Assembly: GCA_000388065.2 (NCBI GenBank)
Contig: KB932206.1
DNA from: Fonticula alba ATCC 38817
Lineage: Eukaryota > Protista > Nucleariida
DNA: 21,059 bases
Strand: one strand, 5' to 3'
This document shows positions 312 to 16,577 of this stretch, one piece after another. Below the pieces are notes generated by a model. The model saw nothing but the letters and a program-made list of their open reading frames with translations. It had not been told where the DNA came from and did not search any database. The first letter of the stretch is position 1. Every line of letters starts with the position of its first letter. The position numbers and the translations under genes were made by a program.

Positions 312-2116
312 ATGTCCACCAGTCGCAACACCTCCTACGACTACCTGATTAAGCTGCTCCTCATCGGTGACAGTGGTGCGTCTTCCTGCTGCTTCATGCA
401 CATGCATGTGCACGTGTGTCCATGGTGGCCGGAAGGGCCCAAATGGTCCTTCGCGCACGCTGGTTTTCCCTCCTGTTGCCCTCCCCCCTCCCCTTCCTTC
501 CCCCATGTGGCCGGCTCCTCTCCCCACCTGGGGAACAGCTCGAAGGATGCGGAGGGGGGGGGGGGGGGGGGGCTCCACATGAGGCGCAGAGGAGCCCTTT
601 GCGGCGCACGGTCCCCCGGCTTCGCCGGGCGACCATGTCCTGGCCCATCGGTGCCCCGAGTGCTACTTTCTTTCCTCTCCCCCCTCCCATTGACACCCTC
701 TCTTTGTCTCTCCTGCTGTAGGTGTCGGGAAGTCGTGCCTGCTCCTGCGTTTCGCCGACAACTCTTTCACCCCTACCTTCATTGCCACCATTGGGTGCGT
801 CCTTTTGAGTGCCGGGCTTTCCGGCCCTCCCCCCCTTGGGGGATGCACCATCTTTTTGGTTCCCTCCCTTTGGCACTTCGTCTTTCCTTCTTTCTCTCTC
901 TTTCTCCTGTCCCTCTCTCCCTCTTTTGTCCTTCTCTCTCCCTCTTTTGTCCTTCTCCTTCCCTCTTTTGTTCTTCTCCTTCCCTCTTTTGTTCTTCTCC
1001 TTCCCTCTTTTGTCCTTCTCTTTCCCTTTTGTCCTTCTCTTTCCCTTTTGTCCTTCTCTTTCCCCTTTGCCCCCCTCTTTCCCTCCCCCTCTCTCTCCCC
1101 TCTCCTTCCCTCCTCCTCCCCTCTCCCCCTCTCAGACGCACCTACGGCTCTCTCTCCTTCTGACCCTCCTCCCGCAGTATCGATTTCAAGATTCGCACCA
1201 TCGAGCTCGATGGCAAGCGCATCAAGCTCCAGATTTGGGATACCGCCGGTCAGGATCGTTTCCGCACCATTACCACCGGTAAGTTGCCCGCCGCATCGGT
1301 CCCTGTCCTTTGCCATGCGTTTTCGTGCTCCTCCTTTCGCTCACCCTCGTGCTCCTGCTTCCCTCTCCCCCCCTCCCCCCGCCCTCCGCTCTTGCAGCCT
1401 ACTACCGTGGTGCCATGGGTATCCTCCTGGTGTTCGATCTTTCCGACCCTGTTTCTTTCCGCAGTACGTCTTTCGCCCCCTTCTTCCGATGCCCTGCCGG
1501 ACACAATCGCACATGCTTCCCCCGCCATGGTCCTAACTTCGTGACGCCCTGCCCTCCCTCCCTTGCCGCTCCCCTGCCCACCTGTTTAGATGTCAACACC
1601 TGGATGCACACCATCGAGCAGCACGCCTGCGGCAGTGTCAACCGCATCCTGATCGGCAACAAGTGCGATATCCCGGCCGACAGCCGGAAGGTCTCCACCG
1701 AGGAGGCCGAGGCTCTGGCCAAGGAGTACGGCATTCGCTACTTCGAGACTTCGGCCAAGGAGGACATCAACGTCACCGAGGCTTTCCGCACCCTGGCCAG
1801 GTACGCACGGACCCGTCCACGCCACAACACCCCCACGGGGGCGTGACACATTGCGCCTCTCTCCTCTCCGGGACGCCCCTCCCTGCCTTTTTTCTAACCT
1901 GCCCTCCTTCGCCCGTGTGTTCCCCCCTCCATATACGCGCACACGCATACACACACGCACAGCGACATCAAGACTCGCCTGATCGACAACAACCCCTCGT
2001 CGGCTGCCGGGGGTGCCGACGACCGCGCTGGCGCCGGGAAGAGCGGCAACACCGTCGACCTGCATGGCGACACCTCGGATGACGCTCCCACCCCCAAGAA
2101 CAGCAAGTGCTGCTAA
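312..2116 (+). CDS. RAB8: Rab8/Sec4-family small GTPase, 6 exons, 222 aa
   Basis: Exons 312-375, 722-794, 1178-1278, 1398-1463, 1590-1800, 1963-2116 total 669 nt, with all junctions GT-AG and in phase. The spliced protein has P-loop [51 protein letters not shown] (Rab8/Sec4-type), G4 NKCD, G5 ETSAK and a C-terminal CC prenylation motif. Confidence 0.95.
921..1070 (+). repeat. Intronic pyrimidine-rich minisatellite (19-21 nt units such as CCCTCTTTTGTTCTTCTCCTT)
   Basis: About 7 imperfect tandem copies read directly in Rab intron 2 (795-1177). Confidence 0.85.
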
Positions 2117-2894: not shown

Positions 2895-4123
2895 CTCTTG
2901 CGTCTACGCAAGAGCGAGAGCCTGTTCATGCACCTGTGCCACGAGAGAAGGGGGTCCATGTCGCGTTCGCGCGCATGCGCCTGTGCTCGTGTCATCCTCA
3001 TGTGTGTGTGTGTGTGCGTGTGTGTGTGTGTGTGTGTATGCTTCAGCACACCCAGACGGCGCCCGTCAGCTGTGCATGCATTCCGGCATCTCCCCACTCC
3101 CCATCCACCTCATGTCTCCCTCCCGGGCCCGCCTCCTTTTCTCTGTCCTTCCCCTCCCCCCTCCTCTTCTTTTTCCCTCCCCCCCAAACCCCCAAATACA
3201 AACATGCCTCTAGTTTCTGTTGGCACCATTGCATGTCTTTTCGTGCCGCGGCCCTGCATGCGCTCCCGGGGACCGGCACACACGGACGCACGCGCACACG
3301 CGCGCGCTTCCTGCCGGTCGACACACGGCTCGGTCGTGGTGTGCGAGGGTGGGCTCCGGCGCGCTAGGACAGCGAGAGGGCGAGGGACTTGCAAGATCCC
3401 CCCCCCCCCCTCCCCGGTCGGGCGAGCTAGGCTCATCTCCAGGGACAAGCTCGATCCCGCTAACGTGCCAACTGTCTGTCCCGCCCCCGCCCTCTCCTCC
3501 CCCAGCCGGGCGGGGGAAAACACGGCCCGTCCGTTCCGCGGCCGAGTCACGTGTCTGACCTGCCCTCCTCGATTTGCCCCCAATCGGGGAACTAGTCCCT
3601 CCCTCTGCGGGGCCTCGCTCCACCCGCCGGGCTGCGCTTGGGGGCATCCTCGAGAGGCGGAGGCCCGGAGCGCGGGCAGGGGGCACGGCGGGGGGCGGCC
3701 AGAATGGGCCTCTTCTTCCATGTGTCTGTTAACCAATAATAGCTGCGATCGCCAGGTGCCATTGTCGGTGGGGATGGCCTCCTTGTCGGGGAGGGGGGGG
3801 CTGGTTCCAGGGGAGAGGGGCCTCTGTGATGGTGGGGCCGTGGCTGGCGCCGGCCTGCGGCCTGGGGCTCCGGGGCCCTGTGTGTGTGCTGCTTCTTTTG
3901 AGGGGAGATGGCCGGAGCCGCGCCGACCCGGTGCAGTGGCACCCGACACATCCACCTTCTGTCCATCTGTCTGTTTGTCCTCCCTTCCCCATCCACTTTC
4001 TCCCCCCCCCCCCCTCTCCCTCGCACGCTTCGTCTCCCCGTCCGTCCTGCCGAGCTTCACCCTCCCCCCTGGTCCCCTTTGCCTCGCTCCGATCCCCGGT
4101 CCCCTCCCCACCGGCGCTGAGAG

Positions 4124-6295
4124 ATGTCCCGCTCATCCATACAGCTCATCCAGCAGCAGCTGGGCCAGGCGTTCGACCTCGACAGCGAGGGCATGCACGA
4201 TGTACGGCTTCAGCATGGTCTTCCTCGGATCCGGCTTTCCGGCCCACACTGACCCCGGCCTCCCTGCCTCGCGCCCCCCCCCCCCCCCAGGAGGCCTATC
4301 TGTCGTACCTCGACTGCCTGGTTCTCCTCTCCGAGGGTCTGAAGGACGTCATCCCGACCATCCTCGACGACGGGACGATTGCCGACGTGCAGCGTGCGCC
4401 ACCTGCCGTTCTTCTCGCGCCTCCCCGGCTGTGTGGGTCTTTTGCCCCTAACAAGCTTTTTGCCCTGCTCCTCCTCCTCCTCCGGCTGCCCCTCATGCAG
4501 CCATGAAATCCCAGCGCATCGATCAGCTCTTCTTCTTCGCGCGCGGGTGCATCGAGCGGGCCCATGAGATTGCCATCGAGCGCGGTTCCACCTCTGGCGA
4601 CAGCTTCACCTCGCCCTCCAAGCCTCGGATTGGATCCCGGACGGAGCAGCATCCGGCGGCCGTGTCGGTCCCGGCGGCCGCGCCGGCTCCGGTGGCCGCG
4701 CCGGCTCCGGTGACCGCGCCGGCTCCGGCCACCGGCCCGCAGGGGCACCTGCTCCCCGGGCAGACAATCTACGATGCCCTGCTGCCGGCGGTTCCCGGCA
4801 CGACCGACACCACGGAGGCCGGGCACGCCCGAGCCAATGCCCTGCTGGCGGCGGCGTCCGAGCACCGGCGCCTGGAGCAATATGCCCGCCAGCAGTCGGC
4901 GGCCCTGTCCAAGTGGGTAGCGCCCTCGGATGACATCTTCAGCACCCAGGCCATCGCCCTGCGCAATCAGCTGGCCACCGAGACAAGCTCCTTCAGCGCG
5001 GCCGTGCAGCGGGAGCTCACGTCCCTGCCCACGAGCGCGCTGCTTCGCTTCAAGTCCATGAATGTGGGCCAGCTGCAGGTGGCTCGAGATCGGCTGCGCG
5101 AGTATGAGCGCAAGACCGAGGGCCCCGGGTCCACGAATATGCTCTCGCCTCAGGCCCATCTGCAGAATGTGCGGCTCGTGTTCTTTTGCCGGCCGAAGGA
5201 TCCGCTCGTCTTCCGGACCACGCTAACCATTTTCCCTGGCTGCCCGGTCTTTCTCCCTCTCTGTGTGTCTGTCTTTCCCCCTGTGTGTGTCTGTCTTTCC
5301 CCCTNNNNNNNNNNNNNNNNNNNNNNNNNNNNNNNNNNNNNNNNNNNNNNNNNNNNNNNNNNNNNNNNNNNNNNNNNNNNNNNNNNNNNNNNNNNNNNNN
5401 NNNNNNNNNNNNNNNNNNNNNNNNNNNNNNNNNNNNNNNNNNNNNNNNNNNNNNNNNNNNNNNNNNNNNNNNNNNNNNNNNNNNNNNNCTCCTCCCTCTC
5501 TCTCTGTGTCTCTCCGCCTCGCCGCATCTCCCTCCGGATGCCGGTGCCTTCAGACGCGCCGACTGCTGGAGGACATCCAGATCCTGGAGTCGCGCCAGCA
5601 GCAGTGTGAGGATCAGCTTCGCCGGGCACCAACCCTCAGGCTGTCGCGCGATGTCGACATCCTCACCGTGGAGACGGTGGCCGAGCAGCTGGTCCTGTTG
5701 CTGAACAATGTCTTCCGGAGCGTGGTCGCCGCCGGTACGCGTGTCAGTCTGCCAGCCTCTCCCCCCTTGCTTGGGCGCCCTGCCTGACCTGTCGGTTCCT
5801 TTCTCGGTGTCCATGCACGCCGGCCTCCCCCGAATGGGCCTGCGCCTTGCCATGTGCTTGCATCGGTCCGCATCGCCGGGACAGACGTTGTCCACCTGGC
5901 CAAGGTCCTGGGCGACGCGCAGCTCTCCTCGGCCAGCAACACGGCCATCCCGCTGTTGGTTTTGGCTCGGCACATCCGCCGGTGGATCCAGTCGGAGATC
6001 CTGCCCAACCTCATGCAAGAGCCGGGGTCCGCGTCTGCCAGCCCCAAGGGCCGGGGTGCCATCATCGACTTCTTCTGCCGGGTGGCGGTGCATTGTTACT
6101 ACAGCCTGTCCTGCTATGAGGCCTCGGCCATCGTGTCCGAGGCGCTCCTGTCGATCCCGATCAAGCGCCTGAAGAAGTCCTGGTCCTATGTCAACCCGAA
6201 AACAAGTCAGGTGCGATGCCTGTCCCCTGTGCACGGCTGCCCTTTCTGCGGCTTTCGTTGCCGATCGCATGCGCCGCATGCGTGCGCGCGCACCT

Positions 6296-6332
<37 letters not shown>

Positions 6333-7717
6333 CCCCTGTCCGGGCATTTGCCTCTGCCGCTTTGTACTTCGCACCTTGCACTGACTGTCGATGCTTGGCC
6401 GTGTGTGCCCCGCTCCGATGCAGGCCTTCTATGCCATGCGCGACCAGATTTCCATCGAGACCAACTACGCTGGGCTTCGCCTGGACTTGAGCCAGGCCCC
6501 GCTGCCGGTCCAGGTATGTGCACATTTTGGCCAGCATCACCACGCACACAGCCGCACGGGCGAGGAGCCGAGCAGGCCGGCCAGCATGGGCGCCCCCCCT
6601 CCCTCGCCCCCCCCCCCTCCTGGCACCCTGCTGCGGTCCCTTTCGCTGGCCACTCACCTCTCGGGTTCGATTCCAGCCCTACATCGGCATGTACCTGCAT
6701 GACTATTCGCTGGCGTCGCTCAGCCAAGATGAGATGGTGTCCTTCTCGGACCATCTGGGCCGGCTGCAGCAGGTCCCCTATCACCAGCTGTCGGTGCAGC
6801 TGCTGGTGCATCACTACATCCTGACCCGGCCGACGACCAGCCCTCCGACGGCCGGGGGCTTGCCCTTCAACTTCGAGCTGGACATCTACCGGCGGTCGAT
6901 CGTGGCCGAGGCCCTGAACAAGGGGGAGACCGACTACTCGCAGTCGACCCTGGCCAAGAGTGGGTCTTTCATTTCGGACGAAATTTACGAGTCTGTGCTG
7001 GGGCGGCTGGAGCGCGCGGCGGTGCCGGCGGCGGCTCCGGCCCCGGCGCCGGGGTCCTCGCCATCTGGGCCGGCGCCGGCCGACGAGCCGCCGAGCCAGC
7101 CACTGCCAAGCTGGCTGCTGGGTGCGACGGCCTCGACATCGCCGAGCGCCGCCGGCACCGGCCATGCATCGGGCTCGTCGTCATCGTCGTCGGTGGTGTC
7201 CGCGACTGGTGCCGCCGGGAAGCCGGCGTCCAGCACCGCCGCCACCGCCGCCGCCACCACCACCACCACGGCCGCCAGTGGCGCGCCGAAGCGCATGTTC
7301 ACCACGCCGAGGATCTCCCCGCATAGCAGTCAGCTGGGCATGGAGCCGGCCGGGTCCATTCCCATGGAGCCCCTGCGTGATGTGGGGAGCATCACCCCGG
7401 CGGCGGGCTCGTCGCTGGAGGAGTGGAGCGAGCTCGGGTCCCCGGAGGCCGGGAAGCTGGAGCAGCTGGCGGCCGACGAGGCCGGGCTGGGGCCGGGCGA
7501 GTCGTCGCAGCTCCCCCCGCCGCCGAGCTACAGCCACTCGGCGCATGGGTCGCCGCTCGGGGATGAGGGGCACATGGCCGCGTCTCGCCGGGCGGCCGAT
7601 GCCGATGCCTTCGCCGCCGGGGGATCCACCGCCGAGGCTCCGGAGTTGGAGATGCTCCTGGGGCCGTCGTCCTCGTTGTCGATCAACGGCGATGCCGGCA
7701 CTGACAGCGACGAATAG
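4124..7717 (+). CDS. RasGEF (CDC25-like) domain protein with N-terminal MIT-like helical domain, 7 visible exons, about 828 aa
   Basis: Exons 4124-4201, 4291-4393, 4501-5168, 5554-5734, 5885-6210, 6424-6513, 6677-7717 total 2487 nt, are in phase, and follow an in-frame TGA at 4118-4120. CDC25 hallmarks appear in order: TVAEQLVLLLNNVFRSV, RWIQSEIL, RGAIIDFFCRVAVHC, AIVSEALLSIPIKRLKKSW, NYAGLR, PYIGMYLHD, QQVPY. The N-terminus QAFDLDSEGMHDEAYLSYLDCL...FARGCIERAHEI resembles a MIT-type three-helix bundle. The start codon is uncertain, and a small exon could be hidden in gap 5305-5488. Confidence 0.85.
4678..4730 (+). repeat. Coding 18-nt tandem repeat x3 (AAPAPV-like units)
   Basis: ccgcgccggctccggtg repeated three times, encoding AAPAPVAAPAPVTAPAPA. 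Confidence 0.85.
5305..5488. other. Assembly gap (N run) inside a RasGEF-gene intron
   Basis: 184 N. The flanking donor (5169) and acceptor (5553) are both phase 0, so no hidden exon is required. Confidence 0.99.
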
Positions 7718-14500: not shown

Positions 14501-16577
14501 CATGGGTCCTCCCTTCCGGCGCTTACCTCTTCTTTCTTTCCCCGCCCCCCCCCCCCTCCTCTCCCCATCTGCCGCCTGTTTCACCCCACGCACAGCGTGC
14601 CCAACAGGGCGTCGCCAGCATGATGCAGTCGTGGGACCGACGCTTCTTCGCGATCAAGAATGATTTGCTCATTTACATGAACCGCAACCGGCCGGACGAG
14701 TTCCCCACGGTGGCCATCAACCTGACCATCTGCACGGTGAAGCCGGTCGACCAGCCGGATCGGCGCTTCCTCTTCCAAGTGATCTCTCCCTACAAGTGCG
14801 TGTCTTGTCCTCGGCCCCCTCCCTCCCTTCGGCAGATGGGCACCCAGCTGACCTTCCACCCCGCTCGCCCGATCGCCGGCCTGGTCGCCCGCCCGGCCGC
14901 CCGGCCGCCCGGCCGCCCGGCCGCCCGCCAACAGGTCTTACATCCTCCAGGCCGACAGCGAGGCCGACATGAACTCCTGGATCCTGGCCATCCAGGAGGC
15001 CATCGGGAATGCGCTGCAAAACTCCTCGGTCAACCCGGCAGACCTCATCCCGCGCGAGGGCCGGCGGAAGCAGGACCGCGCGGTGCAGGACCCATCCCTC
15101 CCATCGCCGATGGCCGTGGCCATCCGCGCGGCCGAGCAGGCCAACAGCGCCTCGGTGCTTGCATCGGCGCCCGGCAGCCAAACCAGCGAGGCGAGCGAGG
15201 TGCGCCCCGCGGCCGGGGCCTCGACCCCCGGGCGTCGGTTGATTGGTGGATCCTCCGGCGGCGGGTCGCTGCTGGCTTCGCTGGCATCCGGCACGGTTGC
15301 CCCCTTCTTCGGTGGGGGTGGTAGCAGCAGCAGTGCCAGCCCGGCCCCGCCGCCGGTCGCCGTGGCGACCACGTCGACCGGTGTCGGTGCCCCGGGGTCC
15401 GGCGATGCCGGTCCCTCTCGGCCGGCCCTGCCGACCAGCGTGCCGTCTCTCTCCTCCGGGGCCCTGCTGTCCTACCTGCAGGAGGTGGCCCCGGGGAATG
15501 CGGACTGCGTGGACTGCGGCCGGAATGCCCCGAATTGGTGCAGCATCAACCTCGGCGTGCTGGTGTGCATCGATTGCTCCGGGGTCCATCGGTCGCTGGG
15601 CACGCACCTGTCCAAGGTCCGGTCGCTGACGCTGGACTCGTGGGAGCCGGAGCTGGTGCTGGTTTTCTCGCAGCTGGGCAACCGGTTTGTCAATGGTCTG
15701 CTGATGAACGGCGCGCCGAAGGGCATGGAGCACGGCATCAACGCCAACTCCACCATCGCCGAGCGCGGCGAGTGGATCCAGCGCAAGTACAAGGATCGGG
15801 AGTTCTTCAACCCGCCGCTGGCGCGTGCCCAGGCTGACCAGGTGCGTGTCCGTATTCATGCCCATGCGCGTGTTTGTGCGCGTGTTTGTGCGCGTGTTTG
15901 TGCGCGTGTTTGTGCGCGTGCGCGTGCGCGTACGCGTGCGTGTGCGTGTGCCTGTGCCTGTGCTCGTGCCTGTGCTCGTGCTCGTGCTCGTGCTCGTGCC
16001 AGTGCCCGGGTCCGTGCGCGTGCGCGTGCGCGTGCTCGTGCTCGTGCCAGTGCCCGGGTCCCTGTCATACATCGGCCTATCTTTTTAGGGACCTCTTCTT
16101 TTTGCTCTTCTTCTGCGCCCCTCCCCTCCGGAGGGGGGCCTCTCCCTGCCCTGATCTTGCTCACCGGCTGTTCCCATCCATCCTCTTGCTCTCTGGCACT
16201 TGAAAAAAAAAAAGATCCTCCGCGACGTCCTCACTCGGAATGGCGATCTCCAGTCAATGTTCACGGCTTTGGTGTGTGGTGCCTCGCCAACCTTGGGTGA
16301 TCCGAGCGCCGGCGGGTTGACGCCGCTGCATTTGGCCGTGCGCACGGGCAACGCCGCGGCCCTGGAGCTTCTACTCCAGTGGACCCCGGGGGCTGTGACC
16401 GGCTCCGGGCGTGTGATCGGCGGCGAGGCCGCGCCCACGACCCCCTCGGTGGTCGATGTCTTCGATGATCAGGGCCGGACCCCGCTGTATCATGCCGTGG
16501 AGCTCGACTACAACCGATTTGTCTTCATCCTCGCCCGGCGCAATGCCAACTTCAAACTCCAGGCTAGCAATGGCAAG
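11568..16577 (+). CDS. ACAP: ACAP/centaurin-beta-type ArfGAP (BAR-PH-ArfGAP-ANK), main part; internal exon(s) missing in a gap; continues at 20632
   Basis: Exons 11568-11724, 11961-12041, 12237-12298, 12400-12471, [gap], about 13491-14423, 14596-14795, 14935-15841, 16215-16577. N-terminus HDCISDTPYFRAQLQLVESNVSDLE is an ACAP-type BAR start. PH domain: KEGYLNKRA..SWDRRFF..CTVKP..DRRFLFQVISPYKSYILQADSEADMNSWI. ArfGAP finger CVDC-x16-CIDC-x4-R (15506-15592) retains the catalytic Arg and is followed by SKVRSLTLDSW. Ankyrin motifs GLTPLHLAV and GRTPLYHAV follow. Confidence 0.92.
12131..12164 (+). repeat. Intronic 7-nt tandem repeat (CTCTGCT)n
   Basis: About 5 copies read directly. Confidence 0.8.
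12589..13428. other. Assembly gap (N run) likely hiding BAR-domain exon(s)
   Basis: 840 N. The visible BAR sequence jumps from FLQNELGSVH to LQGIRKTF, omitting roughly the C-terminal half of an ACAP BAR domain as recalled. Confidence 0.9.
14888..14928 (+). repeat. Intronic 8-nt tandem repeat (GCCCGGCC)n
   Basis: About 4-5 copies immediately before the acceptor at 14934. Confidence 0.8.
15866..16061 (+). repeat. Compound intronic repeat: (GCGCGTGTTTGT)x4, hexamer runs and a duplicated ~30-nt block
   Basis: Read directly in intron 15842-16214. The block cgtgctcgtgctcgtgccagtgcccgggtcc occurs twice. Confidence 0.85.

Follow-up and report, generated by a model that had tools for sequence, protein, structure and literature searches.

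A spliced Fonticula alba gene joining a putative MIT-like head to a diverged CDC25 domain without a detectable REM

The locus described here raises the question of whether a small helical head with the look of an MIT domain and a CDC25-type guanine nucleotide exchange factor (GEF) domain belong to one and the same gene and, if so, what kind of protein such a gene would encode. The locus lies in contig KB932206.1 of the Fonticula alba ATCC 38817 assembly (GCA_000388065.2), in a stretch of 21,059 nucleotides that is referred to below as the window. Its DNA is eukaryotic and GC-rich, the introns are short and of the GT..AG type, and six assembly gaps interrupt the sequence. An earlier note, made from the letters of the window, had read positions 4124-6785 as an MIT-like N-terminus of the VPS9D1 type fused to a CDC25 domain with no recognisable REM domain, and had suggested a link from ESCRT-III (endosomal sorting complex required for transport III) or endosomal membranes to Ras-family signalling. 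The gene is real, expressed and present in single copy in this nucleariid-type amoeba, and its product has 828 residues. The explanation that we favour, with moderate confidence, is a diverged CDC25 exchange factor that lacks a REM and is positioned by an MIT-type head.

The gene has seven exons on the plus strand, from 4124 to 7717, which are read from all three forward frames and splice into a single frame of 2484 coding bases (828 codons) with consistent exon phases, ending in TAG. The start ATG at 4124 has an in-frame TGA directly 5' of it (4118-4120), and the 5' leader contains no ATG. Public transcript data, namely four runs (X1-X4) from two samples of one study of 2012, yield one contig of about 2.7 kb per run. 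Each contig covers all seven exons and extends past 7750, and in all four runs the six GT..AG joints fall at the predicted positions with no extra letters between exons, so that the exons at 4124-5168 are indeed spliced to the CDC25 exons, as the earlier note had assumed. The end coordinate of 6785 proposed there falls in the middle of exon 7 and has been replaced by 7717. Exons 2 and 4 were each found only once in the 31.3-Mb assembly; the contigs with joined exons must therefore derive from RNA and not from a retrocopy (that the runs are of RNA type is our guess), and an artefact of the gene model or a retrocopy is ruled out by the transcript joints together with the single-copy exons.

One of the assembly gaps spans 5305-5488. 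Since the joint 5168|5554, which is in phase 0 on both sides, bypasses the entire stretch that holds this gap, the gap lies inside intron 3 (5169-5553 in assembly coordinates, GT..AG); the sequence on its two flanks comes from a single transcript, none of whose exons is concealed in the gap. A CT-rich direct repeat of about 24 bases occupies 5240-5304, immediately 5' of the gap, and is the likely cause of the assembly break.

The encoded protein can be laid out as a helical head (residues 1-89), a disordered Pro/Ala linker (90-145), a helical region (146-266), a CDC25-homology domain (about 325-565) and a low-complexity tail of 260 residues. All similarity searches and structure predictions for this gene were run exon by exon. 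The presence of a CDC25 domain had been proposed earlier and is borne out by exon 5 (5885-6210, residues 344-452). This exon carries the domain core and matches the Pfam RasGEF family (PF00617) at 5962-6204, over profile positions 45-115, with a score of 34.7 bits (E 2.1e-8), the cut-off being 23.1. Its best match among solved structures is a yeast-type Cdc25 (7nzz, E 2.5e-5), followed by RalGPS1 (3qxl) with a non-significant E of 0.7. In a six-frame RasGEF scan of the gene's own genome, in which about 18 loci were recognised, the same exon scored 32.8 bits over profile positions 45-117, which makes it the weakest of all, the others lying between 43 and 193 bits.

For the segments around the core, a RasGEF profile was derived from nine paralogous domains encoded in the same genome. 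Exons 5, 6 and 7 fall on this profile at positions 66-115, 124-148 and 150-160, respectively, and are thus collinear; exons 6 and 7 score weakly, and the match of exon 7 is confined to its first 11 residues. Upstream of the core, exon 4 (5554-5734, residues 284-344) contains a helical lead-in and then a putative domain start, from about residue 325, that resembles weakly the first residues of the RasGEF domain of one paralogue (L017), both reading V-A-E-Q-L (p 0.06). Downstream, exon 6 (6424-6513, residues 453-482) carries the N-Y-x-x-R motif found ahead of the catalytic hairpin, and exon 7 (6677-7717, residues 483-828 and the TAG stop) begins with the hairpin and the C-terminal helices of the domain, at about 6677-6920. 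By eye, the hairpin starts with P-Y-I-G-M-Y-L, of the P-x-hydrophobic-G-x-Y-L type. From these sequence comparisons the CDC25 domain appears complete in outline and strongly diverged. The remainder of exon 7, 3' of about 6920, is a low-complexity tail rich in Pro, Ala, Ser, Thr and acidic residues, in which no Pfam family was found above the cut-off and which includes a PPSY motif at 7520-7531.

The second claim, that no recognisable REM domain accompanies this CDC25 domain, is borne out by two tests. The Pfam REM family (RasGEF_N, PF00618) has no match anywhere in the window, while it matches 16 other loci of the genome, each directly upstream of a RasGEF locus, so that 16 of the 18 RasGEF loci have a REM. 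Eleven of these paralogues supplied a same-genome REM profile, against which exons 3 and 4 do not rise above shuffled sequences: 108 of 300 shuffles (exon 3) and 282 of 300 (exon 4) reached at least the real score. Not every Ras-family GEF has a REM domain (PMC6534338). Besides this gene, only a RasGEF locus on contig 8 (G000:C8:883539-884515, plus strand) shows no detectable RasGEF_N upstream, and it is a candidate for a second REM-less CDC25 gene.

Each of the putative helices of the head is encoded in a separate exon. Exon 1 (4124-4201, residues 1-26, joint 4201|4291) would supply helix 1 and the following turn, with the landmark A-x3-D-x2-G; exon 2 (4291-4393, residues 27-60 and the first base of codon 61, joints 4201|4291 and 4393|4501) would supply helix 2, with the landmark E-A-x3-Y, as well as the opening stretch of a long loop; and the first part of exon 3 (4501-5168, residues 61-283, joints 4393|4501 and 5168|5554) would supply helix 3. 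The comparator for this arrangement was the MIT domain of Vps4 from the same genome, of which the piece with helices 1 and 2 scores 44 bits against Pfam MIT; this domain, too, is interrupted by an intron, which falls between helices 2 and 3 at about profile position 39. The Vps4 locus (L012:3585-3929, minus strand, equivalent to G000:C8:345084-345428) has an assembly gap directly upstream of its first recognisable exon.

Exon 1 aligns locally with helix 1 and the turn of the Vps4 MIT, with a score met by 1.9% of shuffles (p 0.019). Exon 2 aligns with Vps4 helix 2 in a register that continues exactly from the last residue of exon 1, and its score in that exact register was reached by 0.45% of shuffles (p 0.0045). 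Taken together, the two exons share 12 of 40 residues with the Vps4 MIT in an ungapped alignment that includes both landmarks. At the level of sequence, then, there is a real MIT-type signature, beyond chance, for putative helices 1 and 2. For the third helix, an AlphaFold2 model of exon 3 alone, made from the single sequence and of low confidence (predicted local distance difference test score, pLDDT, 48), places a helix at residues 3-28 of the exon, followed by about 55 disordered residues and then long helices. In window coordinates these parts correspond to a putative helix 3 at 4509-4586, a Pro/Ala-rich disordered linker at 4587-4754 and a helical region of no assigned fold at 4755-5117; the exon as a whole matches no Pfam family. 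The long helical region that the earlier note placed after the head is therefore present in the model, within the limits of such a pLDDT. In the PDB the helix 3 piece finds the tandem-MIT region of ULK1 as its top match, with a non-significant E of 0.6, and exons 1 and 2 have no match. The N-terminus of VPS9D1, to which the earlier note likened the head, would share with it the A-x3-D...E-A-Y...E-R-A spacing and a long loop separating helices 2 and 3.

Relatives of the gene were sought at several levels. An exhaustive comparison of exon 3 with 1.84 billion representative sequences gave 0 matches at E of 0.001 or below, the protein itself being likewise unmatched, and a word search with the CDC25 part of exon 7 gave 415 candidates, none of them at E of 0.01 or below (the candidates being restricted to lengths of 224-714 residues, a range that excludes a protein of 828). 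A protein atlas queried with exons 2 and 3 returned no usable match. Within the genome, exons 2 and 4 found their own locus only, with no paralogues, and the same was true of the Vps4 MIT piece, with no second Vps4-like piece; a genome-wide Pfam MIT scan recognised the Vps4 gene only, and the pattern E-A-Y-x-x-Y-L occurs in only two other places, both unrelated. Apart from its CDC25 core, the gene looks like a lineage-restricted orphan in the data searched. The literature found contains no text that pairs an MIT domain with a RasGEF and no description of such an architecture, and among the titles and abstracts on MIT domains and Ras guanine nucleotide exchange none concerns such a fusion. In these data the gene represents neither a widespread annotated family nor a demonstrated family of any kind.

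Several points weigh against a reading of the protein as an exchange factor with an MIT-type head, and they bear on its two ends differently. Pfam MIT (PF04212) matches no single exon, even at E 10, a negative that is weak given pieces of 26 to 34 residues, a domain spread over three exons and the filters of HMMER; the helix 3 piece does not score significantly against Vps4 (p 0.33); the register test was conceived with the alignment already in view and relies on one comparator; a TPR-like hairpin could yield the same signature; the searches with exon 3 and with the CDC25 part of exon 7 revealed no orthologue that would show conservation; and the tip of the catalytic hairpin, judged by eye, is without the acidic-Gly-Asn motif common to most paralogues, which makes catalysis uncertain. 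With respect to the head, the missing profile match and the non-significant helix 3 would fit an amphipathic helix pair or a TPR-like hairpin without MIT-type function, its MIT signature reflecting a shared grammar of helical repeats and not homology. The silence of the PDB for exons 1 and 2 and of the protein atlas would also fit, as would the loop between helices 2 and 3, which, read from the sequence, is about twice the usual length. It is harder for this explanation to account for two independent exon alignments that fall into one exact Vps4 MIT register, and the ULK1 region, non-significant as it is, is again an MIT-containing one. We regard an unrelated helical head as possible and on balance doubtful, and a three-helix MIT-like fold as the rather probable structure of the head. 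The MIT pattern of the earlier note holds for helices 1 and 2, where the likeness to the Vps4 MIT is above chance; no exon taken by itself matches Pfam MIT.

At the other end of the protein, the CDC25 domain could be a non-catalytic scaffold, like the CDC25-like domains of BCAR3 and the NSP proteins, in which case the protein would not be a GEF even though its layout would be the same as in the explanation that we favour. The rank of the domain as the weakest of the genome's RasGEF loci, the restriction of the recognised stretch to the middle of the profile, the altered hairpin tip, which by eye is also a few residues shorter than in the paralogues, and the lack of a detectable REM to brace the hairpin would all be in keeping with a loss of activity. 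On the other hand, the segments on either side of the core appear to be in place, correctly ordered and of roughly the right length, and the acidic hairpin residue varies among active Rap and Ral GEFs as well; we consider a scaffold unlikely. We hold a similarly low opinion of the possibility that the protein is an ordinary REM-CDC25 exchange factor with a cryptic, highly diverged REM in the helical region, at residues 146-320. A REM is usually less conserved than its CDC25 domain, the CDC25 domain of this gene is already near the limit of detection, and the region is helical, of about the right size and in the right place, according to the low-confidence model; against this, neither Pfam RasGEF_N nor the same-genome REM profile gave any signal there, and the helices predicted by that model, with 30-36 residues, are longer than those of REM domains.

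The favoured explanation, a REM-less CDC25 exchange factor with an MIT-type head, leaves the partner of the head to be considered, and here the suggestion of ESCRT-III fares poorly. Part of the earlier interpretation holds: the mRNA joins a helical head that has an MIT-type signature to a linker, a helical region and a CDC25 domain in which no REM is detectable. The step from an MIT pattern to the binding of ESCRT-III is unsupported. PPxY-type motifs can recruit Nedd4-type ubiquitin ligases, and the PPSY of the tail, being of the kind that does so on endosomal cargo, offers a mere hint in a Pro-rich sequence, in which it may be a chance occurrence; together with the MIT-type signature of exons 1 and 2, it is what speaks for a true MIT domain that recruits the GEF to ESCRT-III polymers. 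There is no canonical MIT profile match to accompany them. Moreover, the MIT domain of VPS9D1 is a bioinformatic prediction for which no structure exists, and it bound no ESCRT-III protein in a systematic screen of human MIT domains and ESCRT-III (Wenzel et al. 2022, PMC9477494), nor did the likewise divergent MIT domains of NRBF2 and ULK1 in that screen (PMC9477494). Since VPS9D1 is the closest model that the earlier note had named, a head of its type argues against an ESCRT-III partner rather than for one. Recruitment to ESCRT-III polymers is therefore very unlikely, and the link to ESCRT-III is best called speculative, with a small chance of being correct; we infer that ESCRT-III is one candidate partner and not the likeliest. 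The broader version, in which a true MIT domain docks a REM-less Ras-family GEF on ESCRT-III filaments or on another machine that bears MIT-interacting motifs (MIMs), such as the autophagy phosphoinositide 3-kinase complex, is also a long shot, but if true it would connect membrane remodelling directly with Ras signalling in this amoeba.

In mechanistic terms, a REM-less CDC25 protein of this kind is probably an exchange factor for a GTPase of the Ras family (Ras, Rap or Ral). No REM would be needed for its CDC25 domain to work, as with RalGPS, and its head would engage a helical peptide on a partner, much as MIT domains do, and thereby set the place or the timing of its action. Accessory domains place Ras-family exchange factors in the cell, and an MIT-type head would be a way of doing so that has not been reported; it would suggest that Ras signalling communicates with the machinery of endosomes or of abscission, and this in a lineage near the root of the fungi. 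A CDC25 domain without a REM that arose in a genome in which 16 of 18 keep theirs would also be a natural test of the dependence of the hairpin on the REM. These considerations carry limited weight for a gene of apparently lineage-restricted occurrence and putative function.

Some features beside the gene deserve mention. Its upstream neighbour is a six-exon small-GTPase gene (312-2116, plus strand), of which the open reading frame at 1310-1846 matches the Pfam Ras family with E 4e-23. As a substrate of the CDC25 domain this GTPase was considered and rejected, its motifs and its C-terminal CC being those of a Rab of the Rab8/Sec4 type and not of a Ras-type protein. Further downstream, at 14969-16300 (plus strand), lies a gene with an ArfGAP domain (PF01412, E 2e-34). 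When the genome collection was searched with the AAA exon of Vps4, only two contigs came up, both labelled as bacterial. They belong to metagenome-assembled genomes labelled Planctomycetaceae (L013:55-3034 and L014:124-3034) and carry three consecutive, intronless open reading frames on the same strand. The first encodes a protein with an FHA domain, the second one that resembles Snf7/ESCRT-III (PF03357, E 1.2e-3, which is below the cut-off), and the third a Vps4-like AAA ATPase that has a helical N-terminus and a Vps4_C domain. These contigs represent either a bacterial-labelled ESCRT-III/Vps4-like cassette or mis-binned sequence.

Known systems resemble the gene in parts, each with a difference that matters. 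In VPS9D1, too, a small head, predicted to be MIT-like, precedes a GTPase exchange domain, which in its case is a VPS9 domain for Rab5-type GTPases, whereas here it is a CDC25 domain; the VPS9 family (PF02204) has no match in the window and matches at four other loci of the genome. The MIT domain of Vps4 (PF04212) aligns with the head over putative helices 1 and 2 in one ungapped register, but there it is followed by an AAA ATPase, while here the head precedes a GEF domain, has a longer loop and shows neither a profile match nor a significant helix 3. The yeast-type Cdc25/SOS class provides the best solved-structure match of the CDC25 core (7nzz), yet in that class a REM of the protein's own braces the catalytic hairpin, and none is detectable in the gene studied. 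RalGPS1 and RalGPS2 (3qxl) show that a CDC25 domain can occur without a REM and be targeted by other domains; theirs are a PxxP and a PH module placed C-terminal to the CDC25 domain, with no helical head, and the likeness to the Fonticula alba gene is one of layout.

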